A program made the translations under genes and the position numbers. Below the pieces are notes generated by a model. It ran no database searches and was not told where the DNA came from. It saw only the letters and a list, made by a program, of their open reading frames with translations. From Heterodontus francisci (lineage: Eukaryota), in NCBI RefSeq assembly GCF_036365525.1, contig NC_090395.1, positions 33,661,229 through 33,725,228 on the forward strand: a stretch of 64,000 nt of DNA, in the 5' to 3' direction. Within the stretch, counting starts at the first letter, position 1, and each line of letters starts with the position of its first letter. Below are positions 2,500-64,000 of this stretch, piece after piece.

Positions 2500-3390
2500 T
2501 GTCACACAGACCCCCCAGCTGCCAAGAATAAGGCATATTAATTTTGTCATATGAACATTGATTTTAAACTGTCACTGGAGCGAGGAAATGACTTGTTGAA
2601 CAAATCAGCTGTGGCTGGAAAAAAACATTTACATACTAACAGACAGTGCATGTGGAGACAAAGGACCATTCCCTGACACATTCAACCCACAATGGACTTT
2701 GATCACCAGACATTGAAGGTGAGGAAGCTCACATTCCAGGATGACTGCTAAGATGGCCAAATTCACAAACAGATGTGGTGACATGACTATCCTACTGGGC
2801 AACCTGAGTTTTTTTGAATTGTACAGACAGTTTGAGAAAAAAAAGACTTTTTACTCCTGGACTGAGAAGACCTTTCTTGTTTGCCCCCATCTCTTTCTCA
2901 CGGAACTCCAAATACACTGAAGACGTGAACCTCGAGAGAAAAGTCTCCTACATCAAACAAGGTTCAAGAAGAATACTAGGCCCCAATGAAAAGCAAGATC
3001 TACCTACAATCAAGGACTCTACAGTGAGCTCGAAGAACAGTAAATGAAACCAACCTCAAATATTGCCTCAAACTTTTCCACTTTATTTTTTCTGCTCTTT
3101 TCTGTCTCTATCTGCACGTGTATCGCGTATACATGCTAGCTTGGGTGCATTGCGTATCCGTAGGCATTAACCGAATTAGAGTTTAAGTTGAATAAAGTTC
3201 AATCTTTCTTCTTTAATGCTAAGAAAACCTGTTTGGCTGGTTTCTTTGCCTTACAATTGGAAGGCAGTGAACAATGATTCACTAAGGGGAAGCTAAAAAA
3301 AATGGTGTGTTTAAAATAAAACCCTGCTATGGTAAAACTAGGTGAAGGCTGAGAGGGAATGCTAGATGCCTTTCTCACCGAGTCATAGTA
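2500..3390 (+). repeat. 5' LTR
   Basis: Direct repeat of 6716-7618; starts TGTCA; AATAAA near 3191. Confidence 0.92.
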
Positions 3391-17464: not shown

Positions 17465-17833
17465 GGGTACAGTAGTACAGTGGTTGAGTTACTGGACTAG
17501 TAATCAAAGGCTTAGACTGGTGATCTGACGTCATGAGTTCAAATCCCACCATGGTAGTTAGGGAATTAAAATCCAGTTAATGTGGAATAAAAAGCTAGTC
17601 TCAACAATGGTGACTATAAAACCACCAGATTATCATAAAACTCTAACTGGTTCACTAATGCCCTTTCGGGAAGGAAATCTGCTGGCCTTGGATGGTCTGG
17701 CTTATGTGTTGACTCCAGATCCACAGTGATATGGTTGATTCTTAAGTGCCCTCCAAAATAACCTAGCAAACTGCTCAGTTTTGTCACTATCACCTTCTCA
17801 AGGGCAGTTATTGATGGGTAATGAATGCTGGTC
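17465..17833 (+). mobile_element. tRNA-headed SINE made of the 5' leader and 3' tail of the Zenon-like LINE
   Basis: B box GAGTTCAAATC; body CTGGTTCACTAATG...GGAAGGAAATCTGC as at 51300-51420; tail CACCTTCTCAAGGGCA...AATGCTGG as at 48440-48490. Confidence 0.85.
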
Positions 17834-18014
17834 TTATATTAGGTACTATAATAGTCAATTAAGTATTCCTTTGTTCATCTAGTTTAAAAGGCATATGAAT
17901 ATACTCAATTTGAACTGTCCAGTTACCTACAGAATCGACTCAATCCCAACAAATTTTATTTGTAGGGATTTTTTTTCACTGCAGTTCAATATAGGATATT
18001 ATAAAAAATAAATA

Positions 18015-36780: not shown

Positions 36781-39700
36781 TTTTTTTCCTTCGTTCCTGG
36801 GATGTGGGCATCGCTGGCAAGGCCAGAATTTATTGCCCATCCTTAATTGTCCTTGAAAAGGTAGAGGTGAGCTGCCTTCTTAAACCGCTGCAGTCCATGT
36901 GGGGTAGGTAACCTACGGTGCTGTTAGGATGGGAGTTCCAGGATTTTGACCCAGCGACAATGAAGGAATAGTAATATAGTTCCAAGTCAAGGTGGTGTGT
37001 GGCTTGGAGGGGAACATACAGGTGGTGGTGTTCCCATGCAACTGCTGCCCTTGTCCTTCTAGGCGGTAGAGCTCACGGGTTTGGAAGGTGCTGTCTAAGG
37101 AGCCTTGGTGCGTTGCTGCAGTGCATCTTGTAGATGGTACACACTGCTGCCACTGAGTGCCGGTGGTGGAGGAAGTGAATGTTTGTGGATCGGGTGCCAA
37201 TCAAGCAGGCCGCTTTGTCCTGGATGGTGTCGAGCTTCTTGAGTGTTGTTGGAGCTGCACCCATCCAGGCAAGTGGAGAGTATTCCATCACACTCCTGAC
37301 TTGTGCCTTGTAGATGGTGGACAGGCTTTGGGGAGTTAGGAGCTGAGTTACTCACTGCAGGATTCCTAGCTTCTGACCTGCTCTTGTAGCCACGGTATTT
37401 ATATGGCTACTCCAGTTCAGTTTTTGGTCAATGATAACCCCCCCAGGATGTTGATATTGGGGGATTCTATGTTCAACAAAGAACAAAGAACAGTACAGCA
37501 CAGGAACAGGCCATTCGGCCCTCCAAGCCTGCGCCGATCTTGATGCCTGCCTAAACTAACACCTTCTGCACTTCCGGGGCCCATATCCTTCTATTCCCTT
37601 CCTATTCATGTATTTGTCAAGATGTCTCTTAAAAGTCACTATCGTATCTGCTTCCACCGCCTCCCCTGGCAGCAAGTTCCAGGCACTCACCACCCTCTGT
37701 ATAAAAATCTTGCCTCGCACATCCCCTCTAAACTTTGCCCCTCGCATCTTAAACCTATGTCCCCTGGTAACTGACTCTTCCACCCTGGAAAAAAGCTTCT
37801 GTCTATCCACTCTGTCCATGCCGCTCATAACTTTGTAAACCTCTATCATGTCGCCCCTCCACCTCCGTCGTTCCAGTGAAAACAATCCGAGTTTTTCCAA
37901 CCTCTCCTCATAGCTAATGCCCTCCAGACCAGGCAACATCCTGGTAAACCTCCTCTGTACCCTCTCCAAAGCCTCCACGTCCTTCTGGTAGTGTGGCGAC
38001 CAGAATTGCACGCAATATTCTAAGTGTGGCCTAACTAAGGTTCTGTACAGCTGCAACATGACTTGACAATTTTTATACTCTATGCCCCGACCGATGAAGG
38101 CAAGCATGCCATATGCCTTCTTGACTACCTTACCCACCTGCGTTGCCACTTTCAGTGACCTGTGGACCTGTACGCCCAGCTCTCTCTGCCTGTCAATACT
38201 CCTAAGGGTTCTGCCATTTACTGTATACTTCCCACCTGCATTAGACCTTTCAAAATGCATTACCTCACATTTGTCCGGATTAAACTCCACCTGCCATTTC
38301 TCCGCCCAAGTCTCCAACCAATCTATATCCTGCTGTATCCTCTGACAATCCTCATCATTATCCGCAACTCCACCAACCTTTGTGTCGTCCGCAAACTTAC
38401 TAATCAGACCAGCTACATTTTCCTCCAAATCATTTATATATACTACAAACAGCAAAGGTCCCAGCACTGATCCCTGCGGAAAACCACTAGTCACATCCCT
38501 CCATTCAGAAAAACACCCATCCACTGATACCCTCTGTCTTCTATGACCGAGCCAGTTCTGTATCCATCTTGCCAGCTCACCTCTGATCCCGTATGACTTC
38601 ACCTTTTGTACCAGTCTGCCGTGCGGGACCTTGTCAAAGGCTTTACTAAAGTCCATATAGATAACATCCACTGCCCTTCCTTCATCAATCATCTTCGTCA
38701 CTTCCTCAAAGAACTCAATAAAATTAGTAAGACATGACCTCCCCTTCACAAAATCATGCTGTCTCTCACTAATAAGTTTGTTTGTTTCCAAATGGGAGTA
38801 GATCCTGTCCGAATAATCCTCTCTAATAATTTCCCTACCACTGACTTAAGGCTCACCGGCCAATAATTTCCTGGATTATCCTTACCACCCTTCTTAAACA
38901 AAATAACAACATTGGCTATTCTCCAGTCCTCTGGGACCTCACCTGTAGCCAACGAGGATGCAAAGATTTCTGTCAAGGCCCCAGCAATTTCTTCCCTTGC
39001 CTCCCTCAGTATTCTCGGGTAGATCCCATCAGGCCCTGGGGACTTATCTACCTTAATGCTTTGCAAGACACCCAACACCTCCTCCTTTTTGATAATGAGA
39101 TGACTGAGACTATCTGCACTCCCTTCCCTAGGCTCATCATCCACCAAGTCCTTCTCTTTGGTGAATACTGATGCAAAGTACTCATTTAGTACCTCGCCCA
39201 TTTCCTCTGGCTCCACACATAGATTCCCATCTCTGTCCTTGAGTGGGCCAACCCTTTCCCTGGTTATCCTCTTGCTTTTTATATATGTATAAAAAGCCTT
39301 GGGATTTTCCTTAATCCTGTTTGCCAATGACTTTTCATGACCCCTTTTAGCCCTCCTAACTCCTTCCTTCCTACTGTCTTTATATTCCTCAAGTGCTTTG
39401 TCTGTTCCTAGCCTTCCAGCCCTTACAAATGCTTCCTTTTTCTTTTTGACTAGGCTCACAATATCCCGCATTATCCAAGGTTCCCTAAACTTGCCAAACT
39501 TATCCTTCTTCCTCAGAGGAACATGCTGGTCCTGGATTCTAATCAGCTGACGTTTGAAAGACTCCCACATGTCAGATGTTGATTTACCCTCAAACAGCCG
39601 CCTCCAATCTAAATTCTTCAGTTCCTGCCTGATATTGTTATAATTAGCCTTCCCCCAATTTAGCACCTTCACCCGAGGACTACTCTTATCCTTATCCACA

Positions 39701-41575
39701 AGTACCTTAAAACTTATGGAATTATGGTCACTGCTCCCAAAATGCTCCCCCACTGAAACTTCGACCACCTGGCCGGGCTCATTCCCCAATACCAGGTCCA
39801 GAATGGCCCCATCCCTAGTTGGACTATCGACATGCTGTTTCAAGAAGCCCTCCTGGATGCTCCTCACAAATTCTGCCCCATCCAAGCCTCTAGTACTAAG
39901 TGAGTCCCAGTCAATATAGGGGAAGTTAAAATCACCCACCACCACAACCCTGTTATCTTTACACCTTTCCAAAATCTGTCTACATATCTGCTCCTCTACA
40001 TCCCGCTGGCTGTTGAGAGGCCTGTAGTAAACTCCCAACATCGTGACTGCACCCTTCTTATTCCTGAGCTCCACCCATATTGCCTCGCTGCATGACCCCT
40101 CTGAGTTGTCCTCCCGCAGTACAGCTGTGATATTCTCCTTAACCAGTAATGCAACTCCCCCACCCCTTTTACATCCCCCTCTATCCCGCCTGAAGCTGCT
40201 AAAGCCTGGAACATTTAGCTGCCAATCATGACCTTCCCTCAACCAAGTCTCTGTAATAGCAACAACATCATATTTCCAAGTACTAATCCAAGCTCTAAGT
40301 TCATCTGCCTTACCTGTTATACTTCTTGCATTGAAACAAATGCACTTCAGACCACCGTAATGCCATTGACTGTCAAGGGGAGATGGTTAAATTTTCTCTT
40401 GTTGGAGATGGTCATTGCCTGGCACTTGTGTGGCGCGAATGCTACTTGCCACTTATCAGCCCAAGCTTGGATATTGTCCAGGTCTTGCTGCATTTCCACA
40501 CAGACTGCTTCAGTATCTGAGCAGTCGCAAATGATGCTGAACATGGTGCAATCATCAGCGAACATCTCCACTTCTGATTTTATGATTGAAGGAAGGTCAT
40601 TGATGAAGCGGTTGAAGAGGGTTGGGCCTAGCACACTACCCTGATGAACTCCTGCAGTGATGTCCTGGAGCTGAGATGATTGACCTCCAACAACCACAAC
40701 CATCTTCCTTTGCGCTAGGTATGACTCCAACAGTGGAGAGTTTTCCCCCTGATTCCCATTGACTCCAGTTTTGCTCGGGCTCCTTGATGCCATACTCAGT
40801 CAAATGCTGCCTTGATGTCAAGGGCAGTCACTCTCACCTCACCTCTTGAGTTCAGCTCTTTTGTCCATGTTTGAACCAAGGCTGCAATGAGGTCTGGAGC
40901 TGGGTGGCCCTGGCAGAACCTAAACTGAGCGTCAGTGAGCAGGTTATTGCTAAGCAAGTGCCGCTTGATAGCATTGTCGATGACACCTCCCATCACTTTA
41001 CTGATGAATGAGAGTAGACTGATGGGGTGTTAATTGGCCAGGTTGGACTTGTCCTATTTTTTGTGTACAGGACATACCTGGACAATTTTCCAGATTGTTG
41101 GGTAGATGCCAGTCTTGTAGCTGTACTGGAACAGCTTGGCTAGGGACGTGGCACGTTCTGGAGCACAGGTCTTCAGTACTATTGCCAGAATGTTGTCAGG
41201 GACCATAGCCTTTGCAGTATCCAGTGCCTTCAGTCATTTCTTAATATCACGCGGAATGAATCGAATTGGCTGAAGTCTGGCATCTGTGATGCTGGGGACT
41301 TCAGGAGGAGGCCGAGATGGATCATCAACACGGCACTTCTGGCTGAAGATTGTTGCAAATGCTTCAGCCTTATCTTTTGCACTGATATGCTGGGCTCCCC
41401 CATCACTGAGGATGGGGATATTTGTGGAGCCACCTCCTCCAATTAGTTGTTTAATTGTCCACCATCATTCACAACTGGCAGAGTTTCGATCTGATCCGTT
41501 GGTTATGGGATCGCTTAGCTCTGTCTCTCACATGCTGCTTACGCTGTTTGGCACGCAAGTGGTCCTGGGTTGTAG
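36781..41575 (-). mobile_element. Zenon-like CR1-group LINE, 5'-truncated, split by CR1 copy C
   Basis: Pieces 36781-37469 and 40351-41575 are colinear with 48407-50250. Confidence 0.88.
37475..40350 (-). mobile_element. CR1 LINE (copy C), ORF2 nearly intact
   Basis: ORFs 38746-40242 (498 aa, EN) and 37556-38791 (411 aa, RT with FADD) are separated by one frameshift; (AACAAAG)n tail. Confidence 0.95.
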
Positions 41576-43813
41576 TGGGTGACCGGTGGTGACCATTTTG
41601 GAGACAGTGACAGTTAGATTTAGCATTATTATGGTAAAAGACAAAGGTAAAAGTTCTCAATTGGGGGAAGGCAAATTTTACAGAGAAATGATCTGGTGAA
41701 AGTGGACTGGATACAGCTACTTGAAGGAAAATCAGTAGCAAACCAGTGGGAGGCATTCAAAAGCAAGATTCTACGGCACAGTGTAGACATGTCCCCACAA
41801 AAAAAAAGAGTGGTACTGCCAAATCTAAAGCCCTCTGGTTATCTCGAAGCATACAGGTTAAGATAAAACAGAAAAAGAAAGCTTATGACAGTCTCAAAAA
41901 ACCTAATACTTTAGAAAGCCTAGAGGAGTTTAGAAAGTGCAGGGGTGAAGTAAAAAAGGAAATTAGGAAAGCAAAGAGAGGACATGAAAAAATATTGGCA
42001 GGTAAAATCAGGGAAAGCCCAAAGATGTTTTATCAATACATTCAGAGCAAGGGGATAACTAAGGAAAGGATAGGACCTATCAGAGATGTGCAGGCAACTT
42101 TTGTGAATGCAGAAGATGCGGGCAGGATTCTCAATGAGTACTTTGTCTCTGTCTTCACAACGGAGAGGGATGATGCAGACATTGTAGTTAAAGAGGAGGA
42201 GTGTGAAATATTAGATATGATAAGCATAATGAGAGAGGAAGTACTAGACGGTCTGACATCCTTAAAAGTGGATAAATCACCTGGGCCAGATGGATTGTAT
42301 CCCAACCTGTTAAGGGAAGTCAGGGACAAAATAGCAGATGCTCTGAGGATCAGTTTCAAATCCTTACTAGATACAGGCGAGGTACCAGAGGACTGGAGGT
42401 CTGCGAATGTTGTACCATTATTTAAAAGGGTGCGAGGGATAGGCCACATAATTATAGCCCAGTCAGTCTGACCTCGGTGGTGGGCAAATTATTAGAATCT
42501 ATTCTGAGAGATGGGATAAACTGTCACTTCAATAGCAAATTAATCAGGGATAGTCAGCATGGATTTGTTAAGGCAAGGTGGTGTCTTACTAACTTAATTG
42601 AATTTTTTGAGGAAGTAACAACAAGGATTGATGAGGGTAGTGCAGTGGATGTTGTCTATATGGATTTTAGTAAGGCATTTGAGAAGGTCCCACATGGCAG
42701 ACAGGTCAGAAAAGTAAAAGCCCATGGAATACAAGGGATAGTGGTGAGTTGGATCCAAAATTGACTCAGTGACAGGAAACAAAGGGTAATGGTCGGATGA
42801 TTTTGCGAATGGGAAGTGGTTGCCAGTGGCGTTCCACAGGACTCAGTGTTGGGTCCCTTACTGTTCGTGGTGTATATTAATGATTTTGACTTAAATGTGG
42901 GAAGCATGATTAGGAAGTTTGAAGATGACACAAAAATTGGCTGTGTAGTTGATAGTGAAGAGGATTGCTGTAGACTCCAGAATGATATCAATGGTTTGGT
43001 TGAGTGGGCAAAAAAGTGGCAAATGGAATTCAATCTGGAGAAGTGTGAGGTAATGCATTTGGGGAGGGCACAAAAAGCGAGGAAATACATAATAAACAGG
43101 AGGATATTGCAAGGGGTAGAGGAAGTGAAAGACCTTGGAGTGCATGTCCACAGGTCCCTGAAGGTGGCAGGACAGGTAGATAAAGTGGTGAAGAAGGCAT
43201 ATGGAATGCTTTCCTTTATTGTCCGAGGTATAGAATACAGAAGCAGGGATGTAATGCTGGAACTGTATAAAACACTGGTTAGACCACAGCTGCAGTATTG
43301 CGTACAGTTCTGGTCACCACATTACAGGAAGGACACAATTGCTCTGGAGAGAGTGCAGAGGAGATTTACAAGAATGTTTCCAGGGCTTGGAAATTGCAGC
43401 TATGAGGAAAGATTGGATAGGCTAGGGTTGTTTTTCTTGGAACAGAGGAGGCTGAGGGGTCACTTAATTGAGGTGTAAAAATTATGAGGGGCCTAGATAG
43501 TGTAGACAAGAAGAATCTGTTGCCCTCAACAGAGAGGTCAATTACCAGGGGGCACCAATTTAAGGTGATTGGTAGAAGGATTAGAGAGGGTATGAGGAAA
43601 ACCTTTTTCACCCAGAGGGTTGTGTGTGTCTGGAACTGACTGCCCAGATTGGTGGTGGAGGCAGAAAGCCTCAACTCATTTAAAAGGTACCTGGACCTAC
43701 ACCTGAAGTGTTGTAACCTACAAAGCTATGGTCCAGGAATAAGAAGGTTGGATTAGAATGGGCGGCTAGTTTTCTCAGCCTGTGCAGAATGGCTGAATGG
43801 CCTCTTTCCCTGC

Positions 43814-48406: not shown

Positions 48407-51400
48407 TTTTTTATTAATTCATGGGATGTGGGCATCGCTGGCCAGGCCAGCATTTATTGCCAATCCCTAATTTCCCTTGAGAAGGTGGTGATGAGCTGCC
48501 TTCTTGAACCACTGCAGTCCGTGTGGGGTAGGTACACCCACAGTGCTGCTAGGAAGGGAGTTCCGGGATTTTGACCCAGCGACAGTGAAGGAACAGCAAT
48601 ATAGTTCCAAGTCAGGATGGTGTGTGACTTGGAGGGGATCTTGCAGGTGGTGGTCTTCCCATGCATTTGCTGCCCTTGTCCTTCTAGTTGGTAGAGGTCG
48701 TGGGTTTGGAAGGTGCTGTCTAAGGAGCCTTGATGCGTTGCTGCAGTGCATCTTGTAGATGGTACACACTGCTGCCACTGAGTGCCGGTGGTGGAGGAAG
48801 TGAATGTTTGTAGATGGGGTGCCAATCATGCGGGTTGCTTTGTCCTGGATGGTGTCGAGCTTCTTGAGTGTTGTTGGAGCTGCACCCAACCAGGCAAGTG
48901 GAAAGTATTCCATCACGCTCCTGACTTGTGCCTTGCAGATGGTGGACAGGCTTTGGGGAGTCAGGAGGTGAGTTACTCGCCGCAGGATTCCTAGCCTCTG
49001 ACCTGCTCTTGTAGCCACGGTATTTATATGGCTACTCCAGTTCAATTTCTGGTCAATGGTAGCCCCTAGGATGTTGATTGTGGGGGATTCAGCAATGGTA
49101 ATGCCATTGAATGTCAAGGGGAGATGGTTAGATTCTCTCTTGTTGGAGATGGTCATTGCCTGGCACTTGTGCGGCGCGAATGTTTCTTGCCACTTATCAG
49201 CCCAAGCCTGGATATTGTCCAGGTCTTGCTGCATTTCTACACGGACTGCTTCAGTATCTGAGGAGTCACGAATGGTGCTGAACATTGTGCAATCATCAGC
49301 GAACATCCCCACTTCTGACCTTATGATTGAAGGAAGGTCAGTGATGAAGCAGCTGAAGATGGTTGGGCCTAGGACACTACCTGAGGAACTCCTGCAGTGA
49401 TGTCCTGGAGCTCAGATGATTGACCTCCAACAACCACAACCATCTTCTGTTGCGCTAGGTATGACTCCAACCACCGGAGAGTTTTCCCCCTGATTCCCAT
49501 TGACCTCAGTTTTGCTAGGGCTCCATGTCTGAACCAAGGCTGTAATGAGGTCAGGAGCTGAGTGACCCTGGCGGAACCCAAACTGAGCGTCACTGAGAAG
49601 GTTATTGCTCAGCAAGTGCCGCTTGATGGCACTGTTGATGACACCGTCCATCACTTTACTGATGATCGAGAGTAGGCTGATAGGGCGTTAATTGGCCAGG
49701 TTGGACTTGTCCTGCTTTTTGTGTACAGGAAATACCTGGGCAATTTTCCACATTTCCGGGTAGATGTCAGTGTTGTAGCTGTACTGGAACAGCTTGGCTA
49801 GGGGCACGGCAAATTCTGGAGCACAGGTCTTCATTACTATTGCCGGAATATTGTCAGGGCCCATAGCCTTTGCAGTATCCAGTGCCTTCAGTCGTTTCTT
49901 GATATCACGCAGAGTGAATCGAATTGGCTGAAGTCTGGCATCTGTGATGCTGGGGACTTCAGGAGGAGGCTGAGATGGATCATCAACTCGGCACTTCTGG
50001 CTGAAGATTGTTGCAAATGCTTCAGCCTTATCTTTTGCACTGATGTGCTGGGCTCCCCCATCATTGAGGATGGGGATATTTGTGGAGCCCCCTCCTCCAA
50101 TTAGTTGTTTAATTGTCCACCACCATTCACGGCTGGATGTGGCAGGACTGCAGCGCTTAGATCTGATTCGTTGGTTATGGGATCACTTAGCTCTGTCTAT
50201 CGCATGCTGCTTACGCAGTTTGGCATGCAGATAGTCCTGTGTTGTAGCTTCACCAGGTTGACACCTCATTTTGAGGTATGCCTGGTGCTGCTCCTGGCAT
50301 GCCCTCCTGCACTCTTCATTGAACCAGGGTTGGTCACCTGGCTTGATGGTAATGGTAGAGTGGGGGATATGACGGGCCATGAGGTTACAGATTGTGGTTG
50401 AGTACAATTCTGATGCTGCTGATGGCCCACAGCGCCTCATGGATGCCCAGTTTTTCATTGCTAGATCTGTTCGAAATCTATCCCATTTAGCACGGTGGTA
50501 GTGCCACACAACACGAAGGAGGGTATCCTCAATGTGAAGGCAGGACTTTGTCTCCACAATGACTGTGTGGTGGTCACTCCTACCATTACTGTCATGGACA
50601 GATGCATCTGCAGCAGGCAGATTGGTGAGGACGAGGTCAAGTATGTTTTCCCCTCTTGTTGGTTCCCTCACCACCTGCCGCATACCCAGTCTAGCAGATA
50701 TGTACTTTAGGACTCGGCCAGCTCGGTCAGTAGTGGTGCTACCGAGCCACTGTTGGTGATGGACATTGAAGTCCCCCACCCAGAGTAAATCCTGTACCCT
50801 TGCCACCCACAGTGCTTCCTCCAACATGGAGGAGTACTGATTCATCAGCTGAGGGAGGATGGTAGGTGGAAATCAGCAGGAGGTTTTCTTGTCCATGTTT
50901 GACCTAATGCCAAGAGACTTCATGGGGTCCAGAGTCGATGTTGAGGACTCCCAGGGCAACTCCGTCCCTACTGTATACCACTGTGCCGCCACCTGTGCTG
51001 GGTCTGTCCTGCTGGTGGGACACGACGTACCCGGGGATGGTGATGGCAGTGTCTGGCACATTGTCTGTCAGGTATGATTCCATGAGTATGATTATGTCAG
51101 GCTGTTGCTTGACTAGTCTGTGAGACAGCTCTCCCAACTTTGGCACAAGCCCCCAGATGTAAGGAGGACTTTGCAGGGTCAACAGGGCTGGGTTGCCGTT
51201 GTCGTTTCCGGTGCCTAGCTCGAAGCCAAGTGGTCCGTCCGGCTTCATTCCTTTTTATTGACTTCGTAGCTGTTAGATACAACTGAGTGGCTTGCTAGGC
51301 CATTTCAGAGGGCATGTAAGAGTTAACCACATTGCTGTGGATCTGGAGTCACACGTAGGCCAGGCCAGGTAAGGACAGCAGATTTCCTTCCCTAAAGGAC

Positions 51401-51601
51401 ATTAGTGAACCAGATGGGATTTTACAACAATCGACAAGGGTTTCATGGCCATCATTAGACTAGCTTTTTAATTCCAGATTTATTAACTGAATTCAAATTC
51501 CACCTTCTGCTGTGGTGAGATTCGAACCTATGTCCCCAGAGCAATACCCTGGGTCTCTGGGTTACTAGTCCAGTGACAATATCATTACGCCACCACCTCC
51601 C
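48407..51601 (-). mobile_element. Near full-length single-ORF CR1-group (Zenon-like) LINE with tRNA-derived 5' head
   Basis: EN (IWGLVPKLGEL, GDFNVHH, LDL, SDH) and RT (FADD, KAQVRSVMEY) from about 51248 to 48467; no ORF1; A box 51582-51592, B box 51519-51528; short A tail; small deletion near 49525. Confidence 0.88.
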
Positions 51602-51802
51602 CTGCGGTGGCAACAATGTGCCTGCGGTTGCGACGGTATATCTGGTTGTTCACTTCCACCGTGTACGATCACATTGACAACTGTTCTACGCGGTTCCAAG
51701 TTGCCACTTGGGCTGACCTTTGTTGAGACAGTTCAAGGTTTGTCCCCTTACTGGCTCTCCAATGTTCAATTCTGGCAATGGTTTGGCAGTTTTGTCAAAA
51801 TG

Positions 51803-51972
51803 AACAAAGAACAAAGAACAGTACAGCATAGGAACAGGCCATTCGGCCCTCCAAGCCTGCGCCGATCTTGATGCCTGTCTAAACTAAAACCTCTGCACTT
51901 CCAGGGTCCGTATCCCTCTATTCCCATCCTATTCATGTATTTGTCAAGATGCCTCTTAAACGTTGCTATCGT
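51803..51972 (-). mobile_element. Short CR1 3' end, same subfamily as copy C
   Basis: Closely matches 37475-37645. Confidence 0.9.
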
Positions 51973-53132
51973 AAAAAAAAAAATTAGCTTTCTGCCATTT
52001 CACCTTGATAATGTCACTCACACCTGTTACTAATTCTGGCTGCAGTGGCTTTTTTGCTATTGGAAGAGTAGTTTGGATCCAACGTAACATTAGTCTTTGT
52101 ACTGGACTACTTTCCATGCCTTCAATGGGTGTATTTCTCGATTTCTTTATGATTCCTTTGGCAATTTTCACTGGCGCCTCAGCCTTTCCATTGCACTGGG
52201 GATAGTGTGGAGATGATGTTTGGTGTTGAATTTCCCAGTCCTGTATGAAGCAGCTGAATTCTTCACTTGTGAACTGAGGGCCATTGTCGCCCATCACAAT
52301 GTCTAGAATGTCATAACGACCGATGTGTGCTTTCAGGCGTTCTACAGTCTAACCGATAGTTATTGAAGTCAGCAGGTCTACCTCCCAATAGTCAGAATGG
52401 TAGTCTACAGTGACAAGATAATCTGCTCCTGCGAGAGCGAAGAGGTCCACTCCCAGCTTCATCCATGTTCTGTCTGGGAAGTCATGTGTCATCAGCAGCT
52501 CTTTAGCTTGCTTAGCTTGGTACTTATTATACACACTGCACAGGCTGACGTGGTCCTTAATTTCATTGCTCATGTTTGGCCAGTTGAGCACTTCTCTTGC
52601 CTTCCTCAGACTCGACTCAATTCCTTGGTGTCAATTCCATGGATGCATTTTAGCATCTCTCCTCTCAACTCCTTAGGGAGAATGACTCTATTTCCTTTGT
52701 ACAGGATGCCACCTTGGGCTGTCAATTCATCTCTGTATGCCTAATACGCGAGTGAGTAACACTCTCTAAATAGGATTGTTGATTTAAAGTTATTCCAGAC
52801 TTAGTAGATTTTCCTGCCTGTTCCACAATTGTTACATCCTTCCATTTATTAGAGCCCTCTGGAATATATGTTACCCAAATACCTACTCGGGCAACTGTCC
52901 TTTGGATGCGATAGCTCTTTCTTGAACACCATTATCACTCACATTACTATCCAACCCTTGATCTGTCTCATTCTGTTCCTCAGGACCTTCATCACAAAAC
53001 ACGTGATCGTTTGTGGTAAAAGGTGCCTCATTTCCCTCTATCAGCTGCTCAGATTCTGAGATTTTGCAATCAACCCTGATTAATCATGAGCAATGATTCG
53101 TAACAGTTTGATTTCCATGCTTGATAGCTACT

Positions 53133-53244
53133 GGGCTGGATTTTCTGTGGCCGCTGCCAAGTATGCCCGCCACCACCAACCACCACCCCCCCCCACAACC
53201 CCCTCCACCATTCCCAACATCGAGGGCTCTGTAAAATTCAGCCC
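53133..53244. mobile_element. 112-bp Harbinger-like MITE inside the Copia-like element
   Basis: TIRs GGGCTGGATTTT / AAAATTCAGCCC, 3-bp TSD ACT. Confidence 0.85.
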
Positions 53245-55675
53245 ACTATCTTACCATCACAACCTATTGCCTTACCAGAGTTCTTCTATTCCCTATGATC
53301 CTCTTTTATAATATACCAAATCTCCAGAATTAAATTCCACCTCATATGGCCTTATACGATGCCTCAGAGCTCTCTGAATTTTCTCAGAGACCTCAGCCTT
53401 GATGAAAGCCCATCTCCCTGCATGTAAAGCATTCAAACGTGCAGAAAAAATTGAACTAATTGTAGTACTTTCTAGAGTAGGAGCACTGTCACACAATACC
53501 GAAGGCAATTTGGGATTCCACACATAGACAATTGATAGGGCCTATATCCGCCAACCATCTGAAACAAATTCTTTGCATGAACCACCCATGTCAGGGCAGT
53601 TGTCAACTTGCAGTTTGGTTGGTCAGCTAAGATTTTATGTAGCATTCATCAATCACTGTGTGATTCCTTTCACAGAGCCCATTGCTAAAATCACTTTCAG
53701 CTGCAGTGTTCATAACCATAATGTTTGTGTTTTCACACATGTCTCTGAACTCGTTATTGACAAATTCTGCTCCATTATCAGTCAGAAACTTAGCTGGTGC
53801 CTCAAGTCCAGTCCTTATCTATTTCTCCATGATCTATAATCACCATTTTGTCCTTGCTACCTATTATTGTAGAAAGACTAAGTCTAGTTTCTAGGCCTAT
53901 AAAATGTCATATGAAAATGTTCTTGCCTTTGTCCCACACCTTTAAATCCATGGCAACTACCTTATTAAAGTCACGTGCCAATGGAAGGCTTACAATAGGA
54001 TGTGACAGCGTCCTCCGATACTTTTTACAGATTTCACACTTTTTATTAATCTCTTCTATTATCCTTGTATACTCTTCATCAATCACACTTGCATCCTTTA
54101 GCAGGGTTTTTCATCTTTGACAAGATGGGTGAGCAAATTGTGTAACTTTAAGACAATTTGCTTTTTATCTCTCTGATTCTTATCGTCTGATGCCATTAAT
54201 AATTCTTTAACATTCTGGCCAGAAACATCATGTTGTGTTAAGGGGATACAATAATGCCTTAACTGGGTAAACTGCAAATTCACTAACTTTCCAAAAACAA
54301 TTGCCTTATCATGCTCCATATCAAGTTTCATTTGTACCTTTTTCATTGAAGGTTTACTCAACAGTAAAGGTATCTCACTAGAGACGACATCATTACTGAT
54401 AAAGTGGCTTACTCCAGCTATTTTACATGGAATTATTACTCCCCTCAGTGACTTCAATGTGTTGTCATCACCTAACATAAAGCTGGTAGTGCTTTTATGC
54501 TCTGTAACCTTGCATCGATCCTCACTACTGAGTGAATCTAGATAACATTGAAACAAATCTGTTCTACATACTGTTGATGTGCAAGCACTATCTAATACAG
54601 CACATTTGAATGAATCCACAACTAACACATTCATCACATGACTAAAACTCCTTGTGACTAGTACAATTTGTTCAGATTCATCAGTAGCTTCCTCTTCTGC
54701 CTCAGAATTCTCTGCATCATGTGGTATTTCAAGGACACTGCCTCTCTGCTTTGGGCAGTTCATTGCATAATGATACTTTGAGTCACACCTGAAGCACCTA
54801 TTAAGTATTCCTGGGGCATTCCTGGGATTTATTCGCCTATCATTACTGTTCCAATTCTGTCTTCCACTGTAATAGTCAGACCTGCTAAAGGTACTTTCCG
54901 CCTCATTCTCAGCCTGAGCCTCAGTCTTTAACTCTTCCATTGTACCTATGCCTGCATCCAGTATCTGGACCATTTCAAAATCCAGTAAACATTGAGTTCT
55001 CCATTCTTTGTGTCACCGCAGAATGCCCTGTTTGTTCGATCAGGGATGAAAGAAATGACTATTTCCCCAGGAATTCCTTTAAGGCAGCAGACATCTGATT
55101 TTACAGGGAGTTTTTTTATCTGAGAACCGAACCCTAGTTAGAACCAAGACCCTGTCCATATGCACCCTCGCACAATCTAGCAATTTAAATGCGAGCACTG
55201 AACCAGGGATTTCCAAATTGAATTTCTTCAATCTTCTATATAGTCCGTTAAAGTCCATGATATATTCCTCCATTGGATAATCATCTGTGTTCCAAAATCT
55301 ATCAAAGTCTCACCATGCCTCATATGCATTCAATAGGTCATCTTTCTTGTAAATTTCATCCAAGTGTTCTAACAGAAGATCCAACCCTTCATCAGTATCC
55401 AACTGACAAGCATCCAGTTCACAAAACACTTTACTTCTGATTTTCCTTTTGGTAGGAAGTGAAAACGCCAAGGCCTTACCTTGTTTCCTGTTTGACACAT
55501 AACCCGTGTCCACATATCCAGTTTATTCTTCCACCGGTCATATGGTTCAGAATCAGAGAACATCAGAAGGTAATCATACCCTGACAATTTATATTTGCTG
55601 TCTGCCATATTTTCCACAATAGCCAGTGAGATTTTAGTTTTAAAAAATCTCAGTTTCCAACCTTCAGCTTTCAGC

Positions 55676-55693
55676 AACCATCCTCTGCTACCA
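55676..55693 (-). promoter_or_regulatory. Primer-binding site complementary to initiator tRNA-Met
   Basis: Minus strand TGGTAGCAGAGGATGGTT, an 18-nt complement of the vertebrate tRNA-iMet 3' end, immediately after the LTR-terminal CA. Confidence 0.92.
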
Positions 55694-55759
55694 TGTCAAA
55701 TTCTAGAACACTTATTGTGGAAGGGAAATGCTGGAGCCTATCTTTACTCAGTTTCTTTC

Positions 55760-55935
55760 CCCAAGTCAAAAAAAGCCCCCTGCTGGGTATTTATTGGAAA
55801 ACAGGTGCCTTCCAGTAACTGGTTACAATACTGAGCTCTCAGTGACCCTTGTAAAAAAAAATCCATGGACTCCTTTTCAGTTTTAAAACACAAAATCACC
55901 AAAATGTAACAACAAAAAATTAAGCACTCATAACA
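55760..55935 (-). mobile_element. 5' fragment of the 43814-type LTR
   Basis: Minus strand TGTTATG...TTTTAAAACTGAAAAGGAGTCCATGGATTTTTTTT matches 43850-43885. Confidence 0.65.
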
Positions 55936-56506
55936 ATGGTGATGGAGAAGTCTGGGACATTGGCTGTAAGGTATGATTCAGTGAGTTTTACTATATTAAG
56001 CTGTTGCTTGACTAGTCTTTGGAACAGCTCTTCCAATTTTGGCACAAGTCCCCAGATGTTTGTGAGGAGTACTTTGCAGAGTCGACCAGGCAGGGTGTGC
56101 CTTTGCCACTTCCAGTGCCTTGGTCAATGCTGGGTGGTCCGTCTGGTTTTATTATGTTTTGACTTTTCTGTAGCGGTTACTGAGTAGCTTGCTAGGCCAT
56201 TTCAGAGGGTAGTTAAGAGTCAATCACATTGCAGTAGGACTGGAGTTGCATGTAGGTCAGACCTGGTAAGGACGGCAGATTTCCTTCCCTCAAGGACATT
56301 AGTGAACCAGATGGGTTTTTACAACAATCCGGTAGTTTCATGGTCACCACTACTGAGACTAGTATTTTCTTTAATCCCAGATTTATTAAACAATTGAATT
56401 TAAATTCCACCAGCTGCCATGGTGGGATTTGAACTCATATCGCCTGAGCATTAGTCCGGGCCTCTGGATTACTAATGCAGTAACATTACCTCTATGCCAC
56501 TGTTCC
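55936..56506 (-). mobile_element. Second 5' end of the tRNA-headed Zenon-like LINE
   Basis: Colinear with 51035-51600: head, body and EN start (NIWGLVPKLEEL). Confidence 0.88.
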
Positions 56507-58417: not shown

Positions 58418-61349
58418 ACAAGGCTCCCCATGATATCAAGAAACTACTGAAGGCATTGGATACTGCAAAGGCTATGGGCCTTGACAATTTCCCAGCAATA
58501 GTACTGAAGACCTGTGCTCCAGAATTTGCCGCACCCCTAGCCAAGCTGTTCCAGTACAGCTACAACACTGGCACCTACCCGGCAATGTTGAAAATTGTCC
58601 AGTTATATCCTGTACACAAAAAGCAGGACAAGTCCAACCCATCCAATTACCGCCCCATCAGTCTACTCTCAATCATCAGTAAAGTGATGGAAGGTATCGT
58701 TAACAGTGCATTCAAGCAGCACTTGCTTAACAACATCCTGCTCAGTGATGCTCAGTTTGGGTTCCGCCAGGGCTACTCAGCTCTTGACCTCATTACTGCC
58801 TTGGTTCAAACATGGACAAAAGAGCTGAACTCAAGATGTGAGGTGAGAGTGACTGCCCTTGACATCAAGGCAGCATTTGACCGAGTATGGCATCAAGGAG
58901 CCCTAGCAAAACTGGAGTCAATGGGAATCAGGGGGAAAACTCTCCGCTGGTTGGAGTCATACTTAGCACAAAGGAAGATGGTTGTGGTTGTTGGAGGTCA
59001 ATCATCTCAGTTCCAGGACATCACTGCAGGAGTTCCTCAGGGTAATGTCCTGGGCCCAACCATCTTTAGCTGCTTCATCAATGACCTTCCTTCAATCATA
59101 AAACCAGAAGTGGGGATGTTCGCTGATGATTGCACCATGTTCAGCACCATTGGCGACTGCTCAGATACTGAAGCAGTCCGTGTGGAAATGCAGGAAGACC
59201 TAAAGGCAGACAAATTGCCAGGACCTGATAAAGGCAGATAAGTCGCCAGGACCTGATGGGTTACATCCAAGGGCTTTAAAGGAAGTTGAGATAGTGGAGG
59301 CATTGATCGAAATATTCCAGAACTCACTGGATTCCGGGAGGGTCTCAGCGGATTGGAAAACTGCTAATGTGAAGGGAGGGAGACAAAAAGCAGGAAACTA
59401 TAGGCCAGTCAGCCTAACATCGGTCATTGGGAAAATTCTAGGGTCCATTATTAAGGAAGAAATAGCAGGACATTTAGAAAAGCTTAACGCAATCAAACAG
59501 AGTCAACATGGTTTTGTGAAAGGGAAATCATGTTGACAAATTTGCTAGAGTTCTTTGAGGATATAACAAGCAGAGTTGATAATGGGGAACCGGTAGATGT
59601 AGTGTATTTGGATTTCCAGTTGGCATTCGATAAGATGCCACATAAAGGATTATTGCACAAGATAGGAGCTCACGGTATTGGGGGTAATGTATTAGCATGG
59701 ATTGAGGATTGGTTAACACACAGAAAACAGAGAGTCAGGATTAATGGGTCTTTTTCAGGTTGGAAAGACGTAACTAGTGGAGTGCCACAAGGATCAGTCC
59801 TAGGGCCTCAAATATTTACTATCTATATTAATGTCTCGGAGGAGGGCGCAGAGTGTAATATATCCAAATTTGCTGATGATACCAAAATAGGTGGGAGGGC
59901 ATGTTGTGATGAGGACATAAGGAATCTGCAAGGGGATATAGCTAGGTTGAGTGAATGGGCAAAAACTTTGCAGATGGAGTTTAATATAGGGAAGTGTGAG
60001 GTCATGCACTTTGGTAGGAAGAATCAAAAGGCAGACTACTATTTAAATGGAGGGAGACTTCAAAAAAGTGCAGCACAGAGGAATTTGGGTGTTCTTGTGC
60101 ATGAAACACAAAAGTTAGCATGCAGGTGCAGGAAGTAATTAAGAAGGCAAAAGGAATTTTGGCCTTTATTGCTAGGGAGTTGGAGTTTAAAAATAGGGAA
60201 GTCTTGTTACAACTGTACAGGATGTTGGTGAGGCCGCACTTGGAGTACAGTGTACAGTTTTGGTCCCCGTATTGAAGAAAGGATATACTGGCATTGGAGG
60301 CAGTTCAAAAGAGATTCACTAGGCTGATTCCTGGGATGAAGGGGTTGACTTATCAAGAACGACTTTATTCATTAGAGTTTAGAAGAATGAGTGATGATCA
60401 TATTGAAATGTACAAGATTCTGAGGGGGTTTGACAGGGTAGATGTTGAAAAGATGTTTCCACTAGTAGGGAATCTCGAACTGGGGGACATAGTTACATAA
60501 TAAGGGGACACTCATTTAAAACTAAGATGTGAAGGAATTTCTTCTCTCAGAGGGTAGTGAATGTCTGGAATTCTCTACCTCGGAGAGTTGTGGAGGCTAG
60601 ATCACTGAAAGTATTTAAAGAGAAGGTAGATAGATTTTTGAAATATTGTGGAGTTGAGGGCCATGAGGAGCTGGCACAAAAGAAGAGTTGAGGTCTGGGG
60701 CAGATCAGCCATGACCTTATTGAATGGTGGGCCAGGCTTGAGGGGCCGAATGGCCTATTCATGCTGCTATTTCATATGTTCTTATAATATCGAGACTTGG
60801 GCTGATAAGTGGCAAGTAACATTCATGCCACACACATGCCAGGCAATGACCATCTCCAACAAGAGAGAATCTAACCATTTCCCCTTGACATTCAACGGCA
60901 TTACAGTCGCTGAATTCCCCACCATCAACATCCTGGCGGTTACCATTGACCAGAAACTGAACTGGAATAGCCACATAAATACCGTGGCTACAAGAGCAGG
61001 TCAGAGGCTAGGAATCCTGCGGTGACTAACTCACCTTCTGACTCCCCAAAGCCTGTCCACCATCTACAAGGCACAAGTCAGGAGTGTGATGGAATACTCT
61101 CCACATACCTGGATGACTGCAGTTTCAACAACAATCAAGAAGCTCAACACCATCCAGGACAAAGCAGCCTGCTTGATTGGCATCCCATCGACAAACATTC
61201 ACTCCCTCCACCACCGACGCACAGTGGCAGCAGTGTGTTCCATCAACAAGATGCACTGCAGCAACACACCAAGGCTCCTTAGACAGCACCTTCCAAACCC
61301 GCGACCTCTACCACCTAGAAGGACAAGGGCAGCTGCTGCATGGGAACAC
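58418..61349 (+). mobile_element. Zenon-like LINE RT region split by CR1 copy G
   Basis: ORF 58456-59241 (RT) resumes at about 60786 (WADKWQVTF); cut at 61349 by copy H. Confidence 0.9.
59201..60785 (+). mobile_element. CR1 LINE (copy G), 5'-truncated
   Basis: RT ORFs at 59294-60500; 3' GGCCGAATGGCCTA..C tail. Confidence 0.9.
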
Positions 61350-64000
61350 AGAATAAGAAGAATCACAGAAGAATACAGTGCAGAAGAGGCCCTTCGGCCC
61401 ATCAAGTCTGCACCGATGCATTAAAAACACCTGACCTGTCTACCTAATCCCATTTGTCAGCACTTGGTCCATAGCCTTGAATGTTATGACGTGCCAAGTG
61501 GTCATCCAGGTACTTTTTAAAGGATGTGAGGCAACCCGCCTCTACAACCCTCTGGGTAAAAATGTTCTTCCTCAAATCCCTCTTAAACCTCCTGCCCCTC
61601 ACCTTAAACTTGTGACCCCTCGTAACTGACCCTTCAACTAAGGGGAACAGCTGCTCCCTATCCACCCTGTCCATGCCCCTCATAATCTTGTACACCTCGA
61701 TCAGGTCACCCCTCAGTCTTCTCTGCTCCAGCGAAAACAACCCAAGCCTATCCAACCTCTCTTCATAGCTTAAATGTTCCATCCCAGGCACCATCCTGGT
61801 GAATCGCCTCTGCACCCCCTCCAGTGCAATCACATCCTTCCTATAATGTGGCGACCAGAATTGCACACAGTACTCCAGCTGTGGCCTTACCAAAGATCTA
61901 TACAACTCCAACATGACCTCCCTGCTTTTGTAATCTATGCCTCAATTGCAAAAGGCAAGTGTCCCAATATGCCTTTTTCACCACCCTATTAACCTGCCCT
62001 TCTGCCTTCAGAGATCTATGGACAAACACGCCAAGGTCCCTTTGTTCCTCAGAACTTCCCAGTGTCAGGCCATTCATTGAATACTTCCGTGTCACATTAC
62101 TCCTTCCAAAGTGTATCACCTCACACTTTTCAGGGTTAAATTCCATCTGCCACTTTTCTGCCCATTTGACCATCCCGTCTATATCTTCCTGTAACCCAAG
62201 ACACTCAACCTCACTGTTAACCATTAGGCCAATCTTTGTGTCATCCGCGAACTTACTGATCCTACCCCCCCCCCCCCCCCCACATAGTCATCTATGTCGT
62301 TTATAGAAATGACAAACAAAAGGGGACCCAGCACAGATCCCTGTGGTATGCCACTGGACACTGGCTTCCAGTCACTAAAACAGCCGTCTGTCATCACTCT
62401 CTGTCTCCTACAGCTAAGCCAATTTTGAATCCACCTTATCAAGTTACCCTGTATCCCATGTGCATTTGCTTTCTTGATAAGTCTACCATGTGGGACCTTG
62501 TCAAAGGCTTTGCTGAAATCCATGTAAACTACATCAACTGCACTACCCTCATCTACACACCTGGTCACATGCTCAAAAAAATCAATCAAATTTGTTAGGC
62601 ATGACCTCCCTCTGACAAAGCCATGCTGACTATTCCTAATCAAATTTTGTCTCTCCAAGTGGAGATAGATTCTCTCCTTCAGAATTTTCCCCAATAGTTT
62701 CCCTACCACTGACATGAGACTCACTGGTCTGTAGTTCCCTGGCTTATCTCTACAACCTTTCTTAAATAGTGGGACCACATTAGCTGTTCTCCAGTCCTCT
62801 GGCACCTCCCCTGTGGCCAGAGAGGAATTAAAAATTAGGGTCAGAGCCCCTGCAATTTCCACCCTCACCTCCCACAGCATCCTGGGACACAAATTGTCCG
62901 GACCTGGAGATTTGTCCAATTTTAAGCCTGCCAAAGCCTCCAATACCTTGTCACTCCCTATGACAATTTGTTCAAGAACCTCAGTCTCTCTCTCTGAGTT
63001 CCATATCTACATCCTCATTCTCTTGGGTGAAGACAGATGTGAAGTATTCATTCAACACCCTACCAATGTCCTCTGGCTCCATCCACAGAGTTCCCCCTTG
63101 GTCCCTAATGGGTCCTACTCTTTCCCTGGTTATCCTCTTCCTATTGATATACTTATAGAATATCTTAGGATTTTCCCTACATTTACCAGCCAGAGCTTTC
63201 TCATATCCCCTCTTTGCTCTCCTAATTGCTTTCTTAAGCTCCATCCTACACTTTCTGTTCTCCACTAATGCTTCCGTTGATTTGCTCTCCTTGTATTTGC
63301 TAAAAGCTTCTCTTTTCCTTCTCATCATACCCTGAATATTTCTGGTCATCCATGGTTCTCTGGGCTTGTTGCTCCTACCTGTTACCCTAGAGGGAACATG
63401 TTGGGCCTGTACCCTCCCCATTTCCTTTTTGAATGTCCCCCACTGCTCTTCTGTAGATTTGCCGACAAGTAACTCTTTCCAGTCTACCTTGGCCAGATCC
63501 TGCCTTATTTTACTAAAATTCACTCTCCCCCAATCCAAAACCTTTTTTTGCAACTTGTCTATTTCTTTCTCCATAACAAGGTTAAATTGTACCATGTTGT
63601 GGTTGCTTACACCAAAATGCTCCCCCACCAACACATCAACCACCTGTCCGGCTTCATTCCCCAGAATTAGGTCGAGCACTGCACCCTCCCTTGTTGGATC
63701 CTCTACATATTGAGCTAAAAAGTTCTCCTGTATACATTTTAAGAACTCTACTCCATCTAAGCCCTTAACATGATGACTACCCCAATTAATGTTGGGAAAG
63801 TTGAAATCACCTAATATAATTACCCTATTATTATTTTTACATACCTCTGCAAATTGTGCACATATTTGCTCCTAAATTTCCTGCTGACTATCTAAGGGTC
63901 TATAATAAACACCTAGCAATGTGGCTGTCCCTTTTTTATTCCTAAACTCTACCCATAAAGCTTCATTTGATGCCCCCTCCTGAACATCATCTCTCCTTAC
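61350..64000 (-). mobile_element. CR1 LINE (copy H), runs off the window
   Basis: ORFs at 61444-63679 cover EN-RT; tail at 61350-61400. Confidence 0.92.

Follow-up and report, generated by a model that had tools for sequence, protein, structure and literature searches.

The analysed stretch of Heterodontus francisci DNA (the window, 64,000 nucleotides of contig NC_090395.1) carries on its minus strand a decayed full-length LINE of 3197 nt, copy 1, which runs from 51603 to 48407. Its parts follow one another in the order tRNA-Thr-like head, body of about 225 nt, 33-nt leader and one endonuclease-reverse transcriptase (RT) ORF, and ORF1 is absent between the head and the endonuclease. Copy 1 is full-length but dead, and represents a very abundant LINE of elasmobranchs, about 3.2 kb long, which is assigned to the CR1/L2 group on the published naming of the partner LINE of the SINE listed below (PMC5499810, PMC3747384). 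The features of copy 1 are:

48407 to 51603, minus strand: full-length dead copy 1, delimited by sequence and contig ends
51508 to 51599, minus strand: tRNA-Thr(AGT)-like head, called by ARAGORN at a relaxed threshold
51582 to 51592, minus strand: A box TGGCGTAATGA, read from the sequence, element positions 12-22
51518 to 51528, minus strand: B box GGTTCGAATCT, read from the sequence, element positions 76-86
51282 to 51507, minus strand: body common to the partner SINE, aligned with SINE 17465-17834 as far as ...GCCACTCAGTT
51249 to 51281, minus strand: LINE-specific leader from body to start codon, from the alignment
51246 to 51248, minus strand: ATG that opens the single ORF; an in-frame TAA lies two codons before it
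50561 to 51152, minus strand: apurinic-type endonuclease domain (Pfam), interrupted by a stop (TAG, 50904) and by a shift of frame near 50850
49058 to 49864, minus strand: RT domain in several frame pieces (Pfam RVT_1 and motifs in the ORF pieces)
48407 to 48505, minus strand: 3' tail common to the SINE, element positions 3117-3160 corresponding to SINE 17791-17834

Related elements in the window are:

55936 to 56500, minus strand: copy 2, comprising head, body and the start of the endonuclease, cut off at 55936 (alignment, ARAGORN -ps90)
17465 to 17834, plus strand: partner SINE, the same head and body fused directly to the LINE 3' tail
36783 to 41575, minus strand: 5'-truncated copy of the LINE in two parts, 41575 to 40357 and 37467 to 36783, 89-92% identity
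58431 to 61349, plus strand: 5'-truncated copy of the LINE in two parts, 58431-59201 and 60786-61349, 89-92% identity

A preliminary description of this DNA had proposed a minus-strand tRNA head with A and B boxes, a body and an endonuclease without ORF1, and all of these parts were found where it had placed them. The 3' end that it gave, 48407, was confirmed; its 5' end, 51601, falls two bases short of the family end at 51603.

The coding region was identified by profile searches and motifs. The endonuclease begins about 28 codons after the ATG at 51248, and its sequence matched Pfam Exo_endo_phos_2 above the cut-off (E=2e-10) and Exo_endo_phos below it (E=9e-4; 19.5 bits against a curated cut-off of 24.5). 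The last RT piece matched RVT_1 with E=4.7e-5 (23.6 bits, under the curated cut-off of 29.6), and the ORF pieces contain the RT motifs GPDNIP..., GVPQ(G)SVLGP and FADD. The element thus has the features of an APE-type LINE, namely an N-terminal endonuclease, an RT with the F/YADD box, and 5'-truncated copies with a fixed 3' end; with 3197 nt and an endonuclease-RT ORF, copy 1 is not a short (100-700 nt), non-coding SINE. Decay is evident from three stop codons (50904, 50183 and 49688), from one frameshift or more near 50850, and from the loss of 1 nt near 49380 and of 78 nt at about 49523 relative to two other copies and the family contigs. A search of protein representatives with the N-terminal piece returned short fragments only, none of them an intact full-length ORF. 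The whale-shark gene models P0007, P0009 and P0014 begin at the same ATG as the ORF of copy 1, and one model, P0001, fuses body-derived codons to the endonuclease. Within the 3' tail lie two AATAAA motifs, a terminal A run and a hairpin, GCTGGCC/GGCCAGC, whose fold was not significant against shuffled sequences (z = -0.6).

At the level of sequence, copy 1 has no LINE 5' UTR of its own: its 5' 320 nt are the head and body of the partner SINE, and only 33 nt before the ATG are specific to the LINE. The SINE itself is 370 nt long and non-coding, and by the alignment it is an internally deleted form of the LINE, lacking about 2.8 kb of coding sequence. The body is probably a Deu-type domain. The 5'-truncated copy at 36783 to 41575 is interrupted by a nested LINE from a different family, recognised by its Pfam matches to endonuclease and RT, and that at 58431 to 61349 by another RT-bearing insert (RVT_1).

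Copy 2 had also been reported in the preliminary description as a separately diverged copy with the same head-body-endonuclease junction. It is real, running from 56500 to 55936, and is 76% identical to copy 1 over 577 alignment columns (element positions 11-567). Its homology starts at the head, the flanks upstream of the two copies are unrelated, and copy 2 is assigned to an older or other subfamily.

Family-wide evidence was drawn from public runs in the form of Logan contigs, which give ends and depth, not start site, strand, RNA level or cap status. In contigs of four runs the family ended sharply, next to diverse flanks, at 51603 and at 48407: the 3' end at 48407 was seen in 1506 contigs with unlike flanks (run X1) and the 5' end at 51603 in 21 (run X15), and depth dropped about 50-fold beyond the element ends. 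Depth was 5.5M at the 3' end against 0.74M at the endonuclease start, the 3'-to-5' decay that 5' truncation would produce. Depth in the RNA-labelled runs X15-X17 is not proof of transcription, since carry-over of high-copy DNA would give an identical picture. SINE deletion joints linking 48461-48505 to 51277-51291 were present in contigs of X15, X16 and X1. The preliminary description would have been contradicted if most full-length copies extended upstream of the head into an ORF1 or a Pol II UTR; the family contigs contained no competing 5' extension, and a different 5' UTR or an ORF1 should have left a loose end at about 51281, where none was well supported. It had also proposed to examine whether full-length copies with target-site duplications start at the tRNA head. 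The contig ends at 51603 place the family start at the head; no target-site duplication of at least 6 nt was found. Two pattern scans of metagenomes gave 0 matches and then 4 chance matches without BLAST similarity to the element.

The head-LINE link could in principle stem from chance or recurrent events and not be a trait of the family, having been produced by a SINE landing upstream, by RT template switching from the 5' end of the LINE RNA onto SINE RNA or by local duplication. The two head-linked copies, the only ones in the window, do lie 4.3 kb apart on the same strand, and LINE/small-RNA template-switch chimeras are known (PMC4476161). Such an origin is nevertheless very improbable, given that the identical junction occurs in copies that are 24% diverged and have unrelated flanks, that the SINE part of the LINE is without a SINE tail of its own and the SINE deletion joint falls at that very point, that the family contigs lack a rival 5' extension, and that whale-shark models join body to endonuclease. 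Chance nesting and local duplication were rejected on the unrelated flanks and the 24% divergence. The tRNA head, body and single endonuclease-RT ORF without ORF1 are therefore, at the level of sequence, the architecture of the family and not a chance SINE landing, as had been proposed, because the junction is common to 24%-diverged copies in different flanks, the partner SINE is its deleted form, and the contig ends and the whale-shark ATG agree with it.

The head was then compared with known promoter and tRNA features. The consensus TRGCNNAGTGG is the A box of type 2 Pol III promoters. The A box of copy 1, TGGCGTAATGA, starts at element position 12 and agrees with this consensus at 7 of the 9 specified positions; the B box, GGTTCGAATCT, lies 53 nt after the A box and agrees with GGTTCGANNCC at 8 of the 9 specified positions. 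The 5' end of the element is 11 nt upstream of the A box, a SINE-like placement, and both this distance and the A/B spacing are workable for a type 2 Pol III unit, in which the start lies about 10-20 nt upstream of the A box. ARAGORN called a tRNA-Thr(AGT) at 51599-51508 in copy 1 with the -ps option and a tRNA-Thr-like head in copy 2 with -ps90; with default settings the head was not called as a tRNA. Rfam at the gathering score, and also at E<=10 on 51200-51700, did not call a tRNA, its sole match being a chance snoRNA (E=5). The minimum-energy fold of the head formed no cloverleaf and was no better than shuffles (z = -0.77). Copy 1 thus has a SINE-type head, with A and B boxes at its 5' end, at relaxed thresholds only.

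Runs of T are scarce on the sense strand of the family. Copy 1 contains no TTTT in 3195 nt, its runs of A, C and G being at expectation, and so has no terminator of four or more Ts before its functional 3' end, as in a Pol III unit. Across 6.4 kb of family sequence a single TTTT was found, a private C>T change, whereas four other LINE fragments in the window contain 35 in 7.66 kb (4.6 per kb; binomial P=1.3e-8 on 6.29 kb of family sequence). Phe codons make up 2.0% of the family LINE and 4.3% of the controls, with TTT:TTC ratios of 3:11 and 51:16, respectively. When the protein was recoded with control codon usage, 4.6 TTTT were predicted (P(0)=0.004). At codon junctions, a T extended a TT in 1/53 cases against 18% expected (P=4e-4), and in 62/265 cases in the controls. 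The absence of TTTT from copy 1 was not significant in a dinucleotide-preserving shuffle (P=0.087) or when synonymous codons were shuffled at the usage of the element itself (P=0.29), and the pattern is therefore a graded, family-wide depletion of T runs with no sharp cut at four. The case for it rests on the comparison with other LINEs and on the codon junctions.

These data are consistent with transcription of the LINE family by Pol III. That the head acts as an internal type 2 Pol III promoter transcribing the whole element is a tentative proposal, to which we give nearly even weight. TFIIIC would bind the A and B boxes of the head, and transcription would begin about 11 nt upstream of the A box, exactly where the copies begin. 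Pol III would then read through the T-run-free element to a terminator in the flank, and target-primed reverse transcription would copy this RNA by way of the 3' tail shared with the SINE. Against this, Pol III transcripts are normally shorter than about 0.5 kb and uncapped, and LINEs are held to use Pol II (PMC10886601, PMC5786205). The lack of a default tRNA call and of a significant fold for the head also counts against it, as do the AATAAA motifs near the 3' end, which would suit Pol II too.

It is rather unlikely, in our estimate, that the functional RNA is instead made by Pol II, the SINE head and body having been recruited to serve either as 5' UTR or as an internal promoter or enhancer for Pol II and the A and B boxes being a relic or giving short abortive RNAs. 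LINEs are regarded as being transcribed by Pol II from internal 5' promoters (PMC10886601, PMC5786205), translation of the one ORF favours a capped RNA, and the degenerate tRNA head and the position of the AATAAA motifs fit as well. Recruitment to Pol II would, however, leave unexplained the family-specific avoidance of T runs, which extends through 2.8 kb of coding sequence and to the codon junctions, and would require Pol II to start at the very nucleotide where the Pol III transcript of the SINE starts. Translation does not separate Pol II from Pol III: the leader, 353 nt in total counted from 51601, contains 8 upstream ATGs, so that plain cap-dependent scanning looks unlikely for either, and the ATGs are equally awkward for a capped mRNA. 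A part played by the body in translation initiation, as suggested in the preliminary description, is conjecture.

A division of labour would accommodate both the T-run avoidance and the difficulty of translating an uncapped RNA that contains 8 upstream ATGs. Transcripts made by Pol III from the head would be RT templates only, a 'long SINE' mobilised in trans, whereas the protein would be encoded by rare transcripts, made by Pol II or by read-through, from the same copy or from others. That the tail works in trans is evident from the partner SINE. The usual view that CR1/L2-type proteins favour their own RNA in cis counts against such an arrangement; it also posits two classes of RNA, to which nothing in the analysis points, and we consider it improbable. 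The stronger form of the Pol III reading, in which the family is an autonomous coding retrotransposon whose full 3.2-kb Pol III RNA would be translated by internal or otherwise cap-independent initiation and whose SINE would arise by internal deletion, is a possible account that we hold with some reserve.

Several described systems share parts of this organisation. The tRNA-headed DeuSINEs of cartilaginous fishes and the coelacanth (SacSINE1, SacSINE1-CM/-RT and LmeSINE1; PMC5499810, PMC3747384), whose partner LINE has been named L2-2_CM (PMC5499810) or 'CR1-4_DR-like' (PMC3747384), likewise combine a conserved body with a tRNA-like head that carries A and B boxes and with a 3' tail copied from a CR1/L2-type LINE. 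They occur in sharks including the whale shark, and the SINE at 17465-17834 agrees with their description. DeuSINEs are short and non-coding, and in published schemes their homology to the LINE is confined to the tail, whereas here head and body precede a 2.8-kb endonuclease-RT ORF. The eel UnaL2/UnaSINE1 type, a single-ORF L2/CR1 LINE with a stringent 3' tail, is similar in its length of about 3.2-3.6 kb and in its one endonuclease-RT ORF without ORF1 (PMC3747384), and also in a tail common to a tRNA-derived partner SINE, 5'-truncated copies and the lack of a clear target-site duplication. LINEs of that type differ in having their own 5' UTR and in being taken as Pol II-driven, and no member that has a tRNA-type head or avoids T runs has been described. 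Bipartite non-autonomous LINEs, and SINEs whose bodies come from the 5' part of a LINE, were found only for RTE and Vingi in a Repbase-wide screen (Kojima 2018, PMC5786205). There, too, the sequence common to SINE and LINE includes a 5' portion in addition to the 3' tail, and the SINE resembles an internal-deletion derivative, but the shared part is the LINE 5' UTR behind a separately acquired head, whereas here the small-RNA head sits on the autonomous element. The TRIMp3 LTR retrotransposons (Cassandra, Helenus and Ajax) resemble the family as members of a usually Pol II-transcribed class with a Pol III promoter derived from a small RNA, 5S or tRNA; they are non-coding and 0.3-1.3 kb long, in contrast to the coding, 3.2-kb LINE (PMC10886601). 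In their author's argument, length is constrained by the processivity of Pol III, and any autonomous partner has to rely on Pol II (PMC10886601). A literature search returned no description of a tRNA-headed autonomous LINE.

In the textbook division, LINEs are coding and transcribed by Pol II, and SINEs are non-coding, transcribed by Pol III and parasitic on LINEs. If the Pol III reading is true, this boundary could be crossed, here by a very successful LINE with the promoter module of a SINE, with Pol III terminators purged from its coding strand. At least some SINEs could then have been born from their own LINE by one internal deletion, and not by the addition of a head to a LINE fragment. 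In the stronger form of the reading, the family would offer a natural Pol III-made mRNA in a vertebrate. It would be a natural system for the limits of Pol III transcript length and translatability, and would also help to explain the LINE and SINE load of large shark genomes.

Copy 1, a tRNA-headed LINE on the minus strand, was found to have the layout that a preliminary description had assigned to it: a tRNA-like head with A and B boxes, a body, and a single endonuclease-reverse transcriptase ORF with no ORF1, confirmed at 51603 to 48407. Relatives were sought by self-comparison of the window, and four were found: a second head-linked copy (copy 2), a partner SINE, and two further LINE copies that are 5'-truncated and about 90% identical.

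Features of copy 1 and its head-bearing relatives (window positions)
51603 to 48407, minus: copy 1, single LINE of 3197 nt
51599-51508, minus: tRNA-like segment of copy 1, 92 nt
51592-51582, minus: A box of copy 1, TGGCGTAATGA
51528-51518, minus: B box of copy 1, GGTTCGAATCT
ending at about 51282, minus: body of copy 1, about 225 nt
after the body, minus: LINE-specific stretch of copy 1, 33 nt
51248, minus: ATG of the copy 1 ORF; an in-frame TAA stands two codons before it
56500 to 55936: copy 2, 76% identical to copy 1, running from the head through the body and 200 nt into the ORF
about 17465-17834, plus: partner SINE, same head and body followed immediately by the LINE's final 45-100 nt

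In copy 1, a single reading frame codes for both enzymes: the endonuclease is of the apurinic type (Pfam Exo_endo_phos_2, E=2e-10), and the reverse transcriptase matches RVT_1 in its last frame piece (E=4.7e-5) and has the motifs GPDNIP, GVPQ.SVLGP and FADD. Just about 28 codons separate the ORF start from the endonuclease, which leaves no space for an ORF1. This copy is dead: stop codons interrupt it at 50904, 50183 and 49688, the frame shifts near 50850, one nucleotide is missing near 49380, and 78 nt are deleted at about 49523 (judged against two other copies and family contigs). Copies 1 and 2 are separated by an LTR-retrotransposon remnant (51620-55935, minus; integrase core trace at 51959-52297, E=1e-4), and copy 1 appears to have landed within or beside it. 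Elsewhere, the window holds a SCAN-domain ORF at 4058-4630, plus strand (Pfam E=7e-9).

The copy 1 head was read as tRNA-Thr(AGT) by ARAGORN at the relaxed -ps setting, and the copy 2 head was also called, at -ps90. Default ARAGORN and Rfam gave no tRNA call for the copy 1 head, and its fold was no better than that of shuffled sequences. The head resembles a tRNA at relaxed settings only, as SINE heads commonly do, with neither default calls nor a better-than-shuffle fold.

Copy 2 had been described as sharing the head-body-endonuclease junction, and the arrangement as family architecture rather than a chance SINE landing. The junction is real: homology between the two copies starts at the head, with unrelated flanks upstream, and runs unbroken across ...GCCACTCAGTT (about 51281), where the SINE switches to the tail. 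Contigs from four public runs, placed on the element at a likeness of at least 85%, defined two sharp boundaries of the family, one at 48407 (where 1506 contigs of run X1 have unlike flanks) and the other at 51603. Depth falls from 5.5M to 0.74M in the 3' to 5' direction, the pattern that 5' truncation of copies predicts, and climbs over the body, the SINE's contribution; joints of 48461-48505 to 51277-51291 represent the SINE form. Upstream extension into an ORF1 or Pol II UTR, which the preliminary description had set against its own reading, was not seen: contigs of the four runs contained no well-supported loose end near 51281, the sign of another 5' UTR or ORF1. The closest proteins in a library of 1.8 billion were whale-shark gene models, three of which use the same ATG as start; one model, P0001, fuses body codons (51405 to 51364) to the endonuclease (51158 to 50895). 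Metagenome scans returned nothing related. Copies 1 and 2, the contig ends and the whale-shark models argue that the head-body-ORF architecture is very probably a family property, and a link produced by chance or by repeated chimeras is highly improbable.

From the ATG to the endonuclease, small indels make the frame differ from one subfamily to another. At sites 51158 / 51192, an insertion of 4 nt (TAAC in the element's orientation) occupies about 15-40% of family contig depth and a 1-nt insertion about 4-16%, and whale-shark gene models, too, use two different frames ahead of the endonuclease; neither the leader peptide nor the start codon used is therefore constant across subfamilies. Between 55 and 69% of the element's 31-letter words were present in DNA runs X1-X14, from four differently labelled organisms (A-D), so near-identical family copies are common to several related species or labels.

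Vertebrate Pol III is stopped by four or more T residues on the sense strand. Copy 1 contains no TTTT in 3195 nt, with A, C and G runs at the expected level, and the other family pieces contain one in 3239 nt, which stems from a private C>T change within the tail. Four endonuclease- or reverse transcriptase-bearing LINE fragments of other families in the window served as controls and contain 35 in 7.66 kb (binomial P=1.3e-8, on 6.29 kb of family sequence).

Control LINE fragments
37468-40356, minus: endonuclease and reverse transcriptase, open frames of 498 and 411 aa, nested within a headed-LINE copy that is 5'-truncated
59202-60785, plus: reverse transcriptase-bearing, nested in a second truncated headed-LINE copy
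41746-43478, plus: reverse transcriptase-bearing
62227-63679, minus: reverse transcriptase-bearing

The LINE nested at 37468-40356 has a normal T-run density (5.2 per kb), and one control is not old, because it retains long open frames. Depletion in the family is graded rather than cut sharply at four, TT and TTT being scarce too. Phe accounts for 2.0% of the element's codons versus 4.3% of those in the controls, with TTT:TTC at 3:11 versus 51:16, and recoding the element's protein with control-LINE codon usage predicted 4.6 TTTT (P(0)=0.004). At codon junctions, TT was extended by T in 1 of 53 cases, where the element's own positional T content gives an expectation of 18% (P=4e-4), and in 62 of 265 in the controls. 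The depletion is specific to the element despite weak shuffle tests of the absence of TTTT from copy 1 (dinucleotide, P=0.087; synonymous with the element's own usage, P=0.29).

Copies start 11 nt upstream of the A box. The head may serve as an internal type 2 Pol III promoter and fix the 5' end; Pol III would then transcribe the whole element into the flank, and the RNA would be reverse-transcribed through the tail common to LINE and SINE. Transcription by Pol II, with the SINE module serving as UTR or promoter, is a less likely possibility, leaving unexplained both the T-run avoidance and the start common to LINE and SINE. The RNA-labelled runs (X15-X17) were contigs only, whose depth may be DNA carry-over and so is no measure of transcription. 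Translation is the weak point of the Pol III reading, because RNA made by Pol III has no cap and eight upstream ATGs lie in the leader (353 nt when counted from 51601); an arrangement in which Pol III RNA is template only, with protein from other transcripts, is unlikely. Weak translation of Pol III transcripts was reportedly possible in work of about 1995, and a report of that year is said to have claimed that the human L1 promoter depends on Pol III, a claim later abandoned.

The tRNA-Deu SINEs of shark and coelacanth, SacSINE1 and LmeSINE1, have a tail in common with a CR1/L2-type LINE, and the partner SINE is like them by published description rather than by sequence comparison (PMC5499810, PMC3747384). 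A Repbase-wide screen by Kojima recorded SINE bodies with LINE 5' parts for RTE and Vingi only (PMC5786205), and the TRIMp3 paper by the same author assigns non-LTR elements to Pol II and puts the length limit that Pol III processivity sets on such elements at about 1 kb (PMC10886601). No autonomous LINE bearing a small-RNA head turned up in full-text literature searches. The present family is a coding LINE that carries a SINE's 5' module and whose sense strand has been purged of oligo-T; on this sequence evidence its transcription by Pol III, while unproven and put forward tentatively, is plausible.
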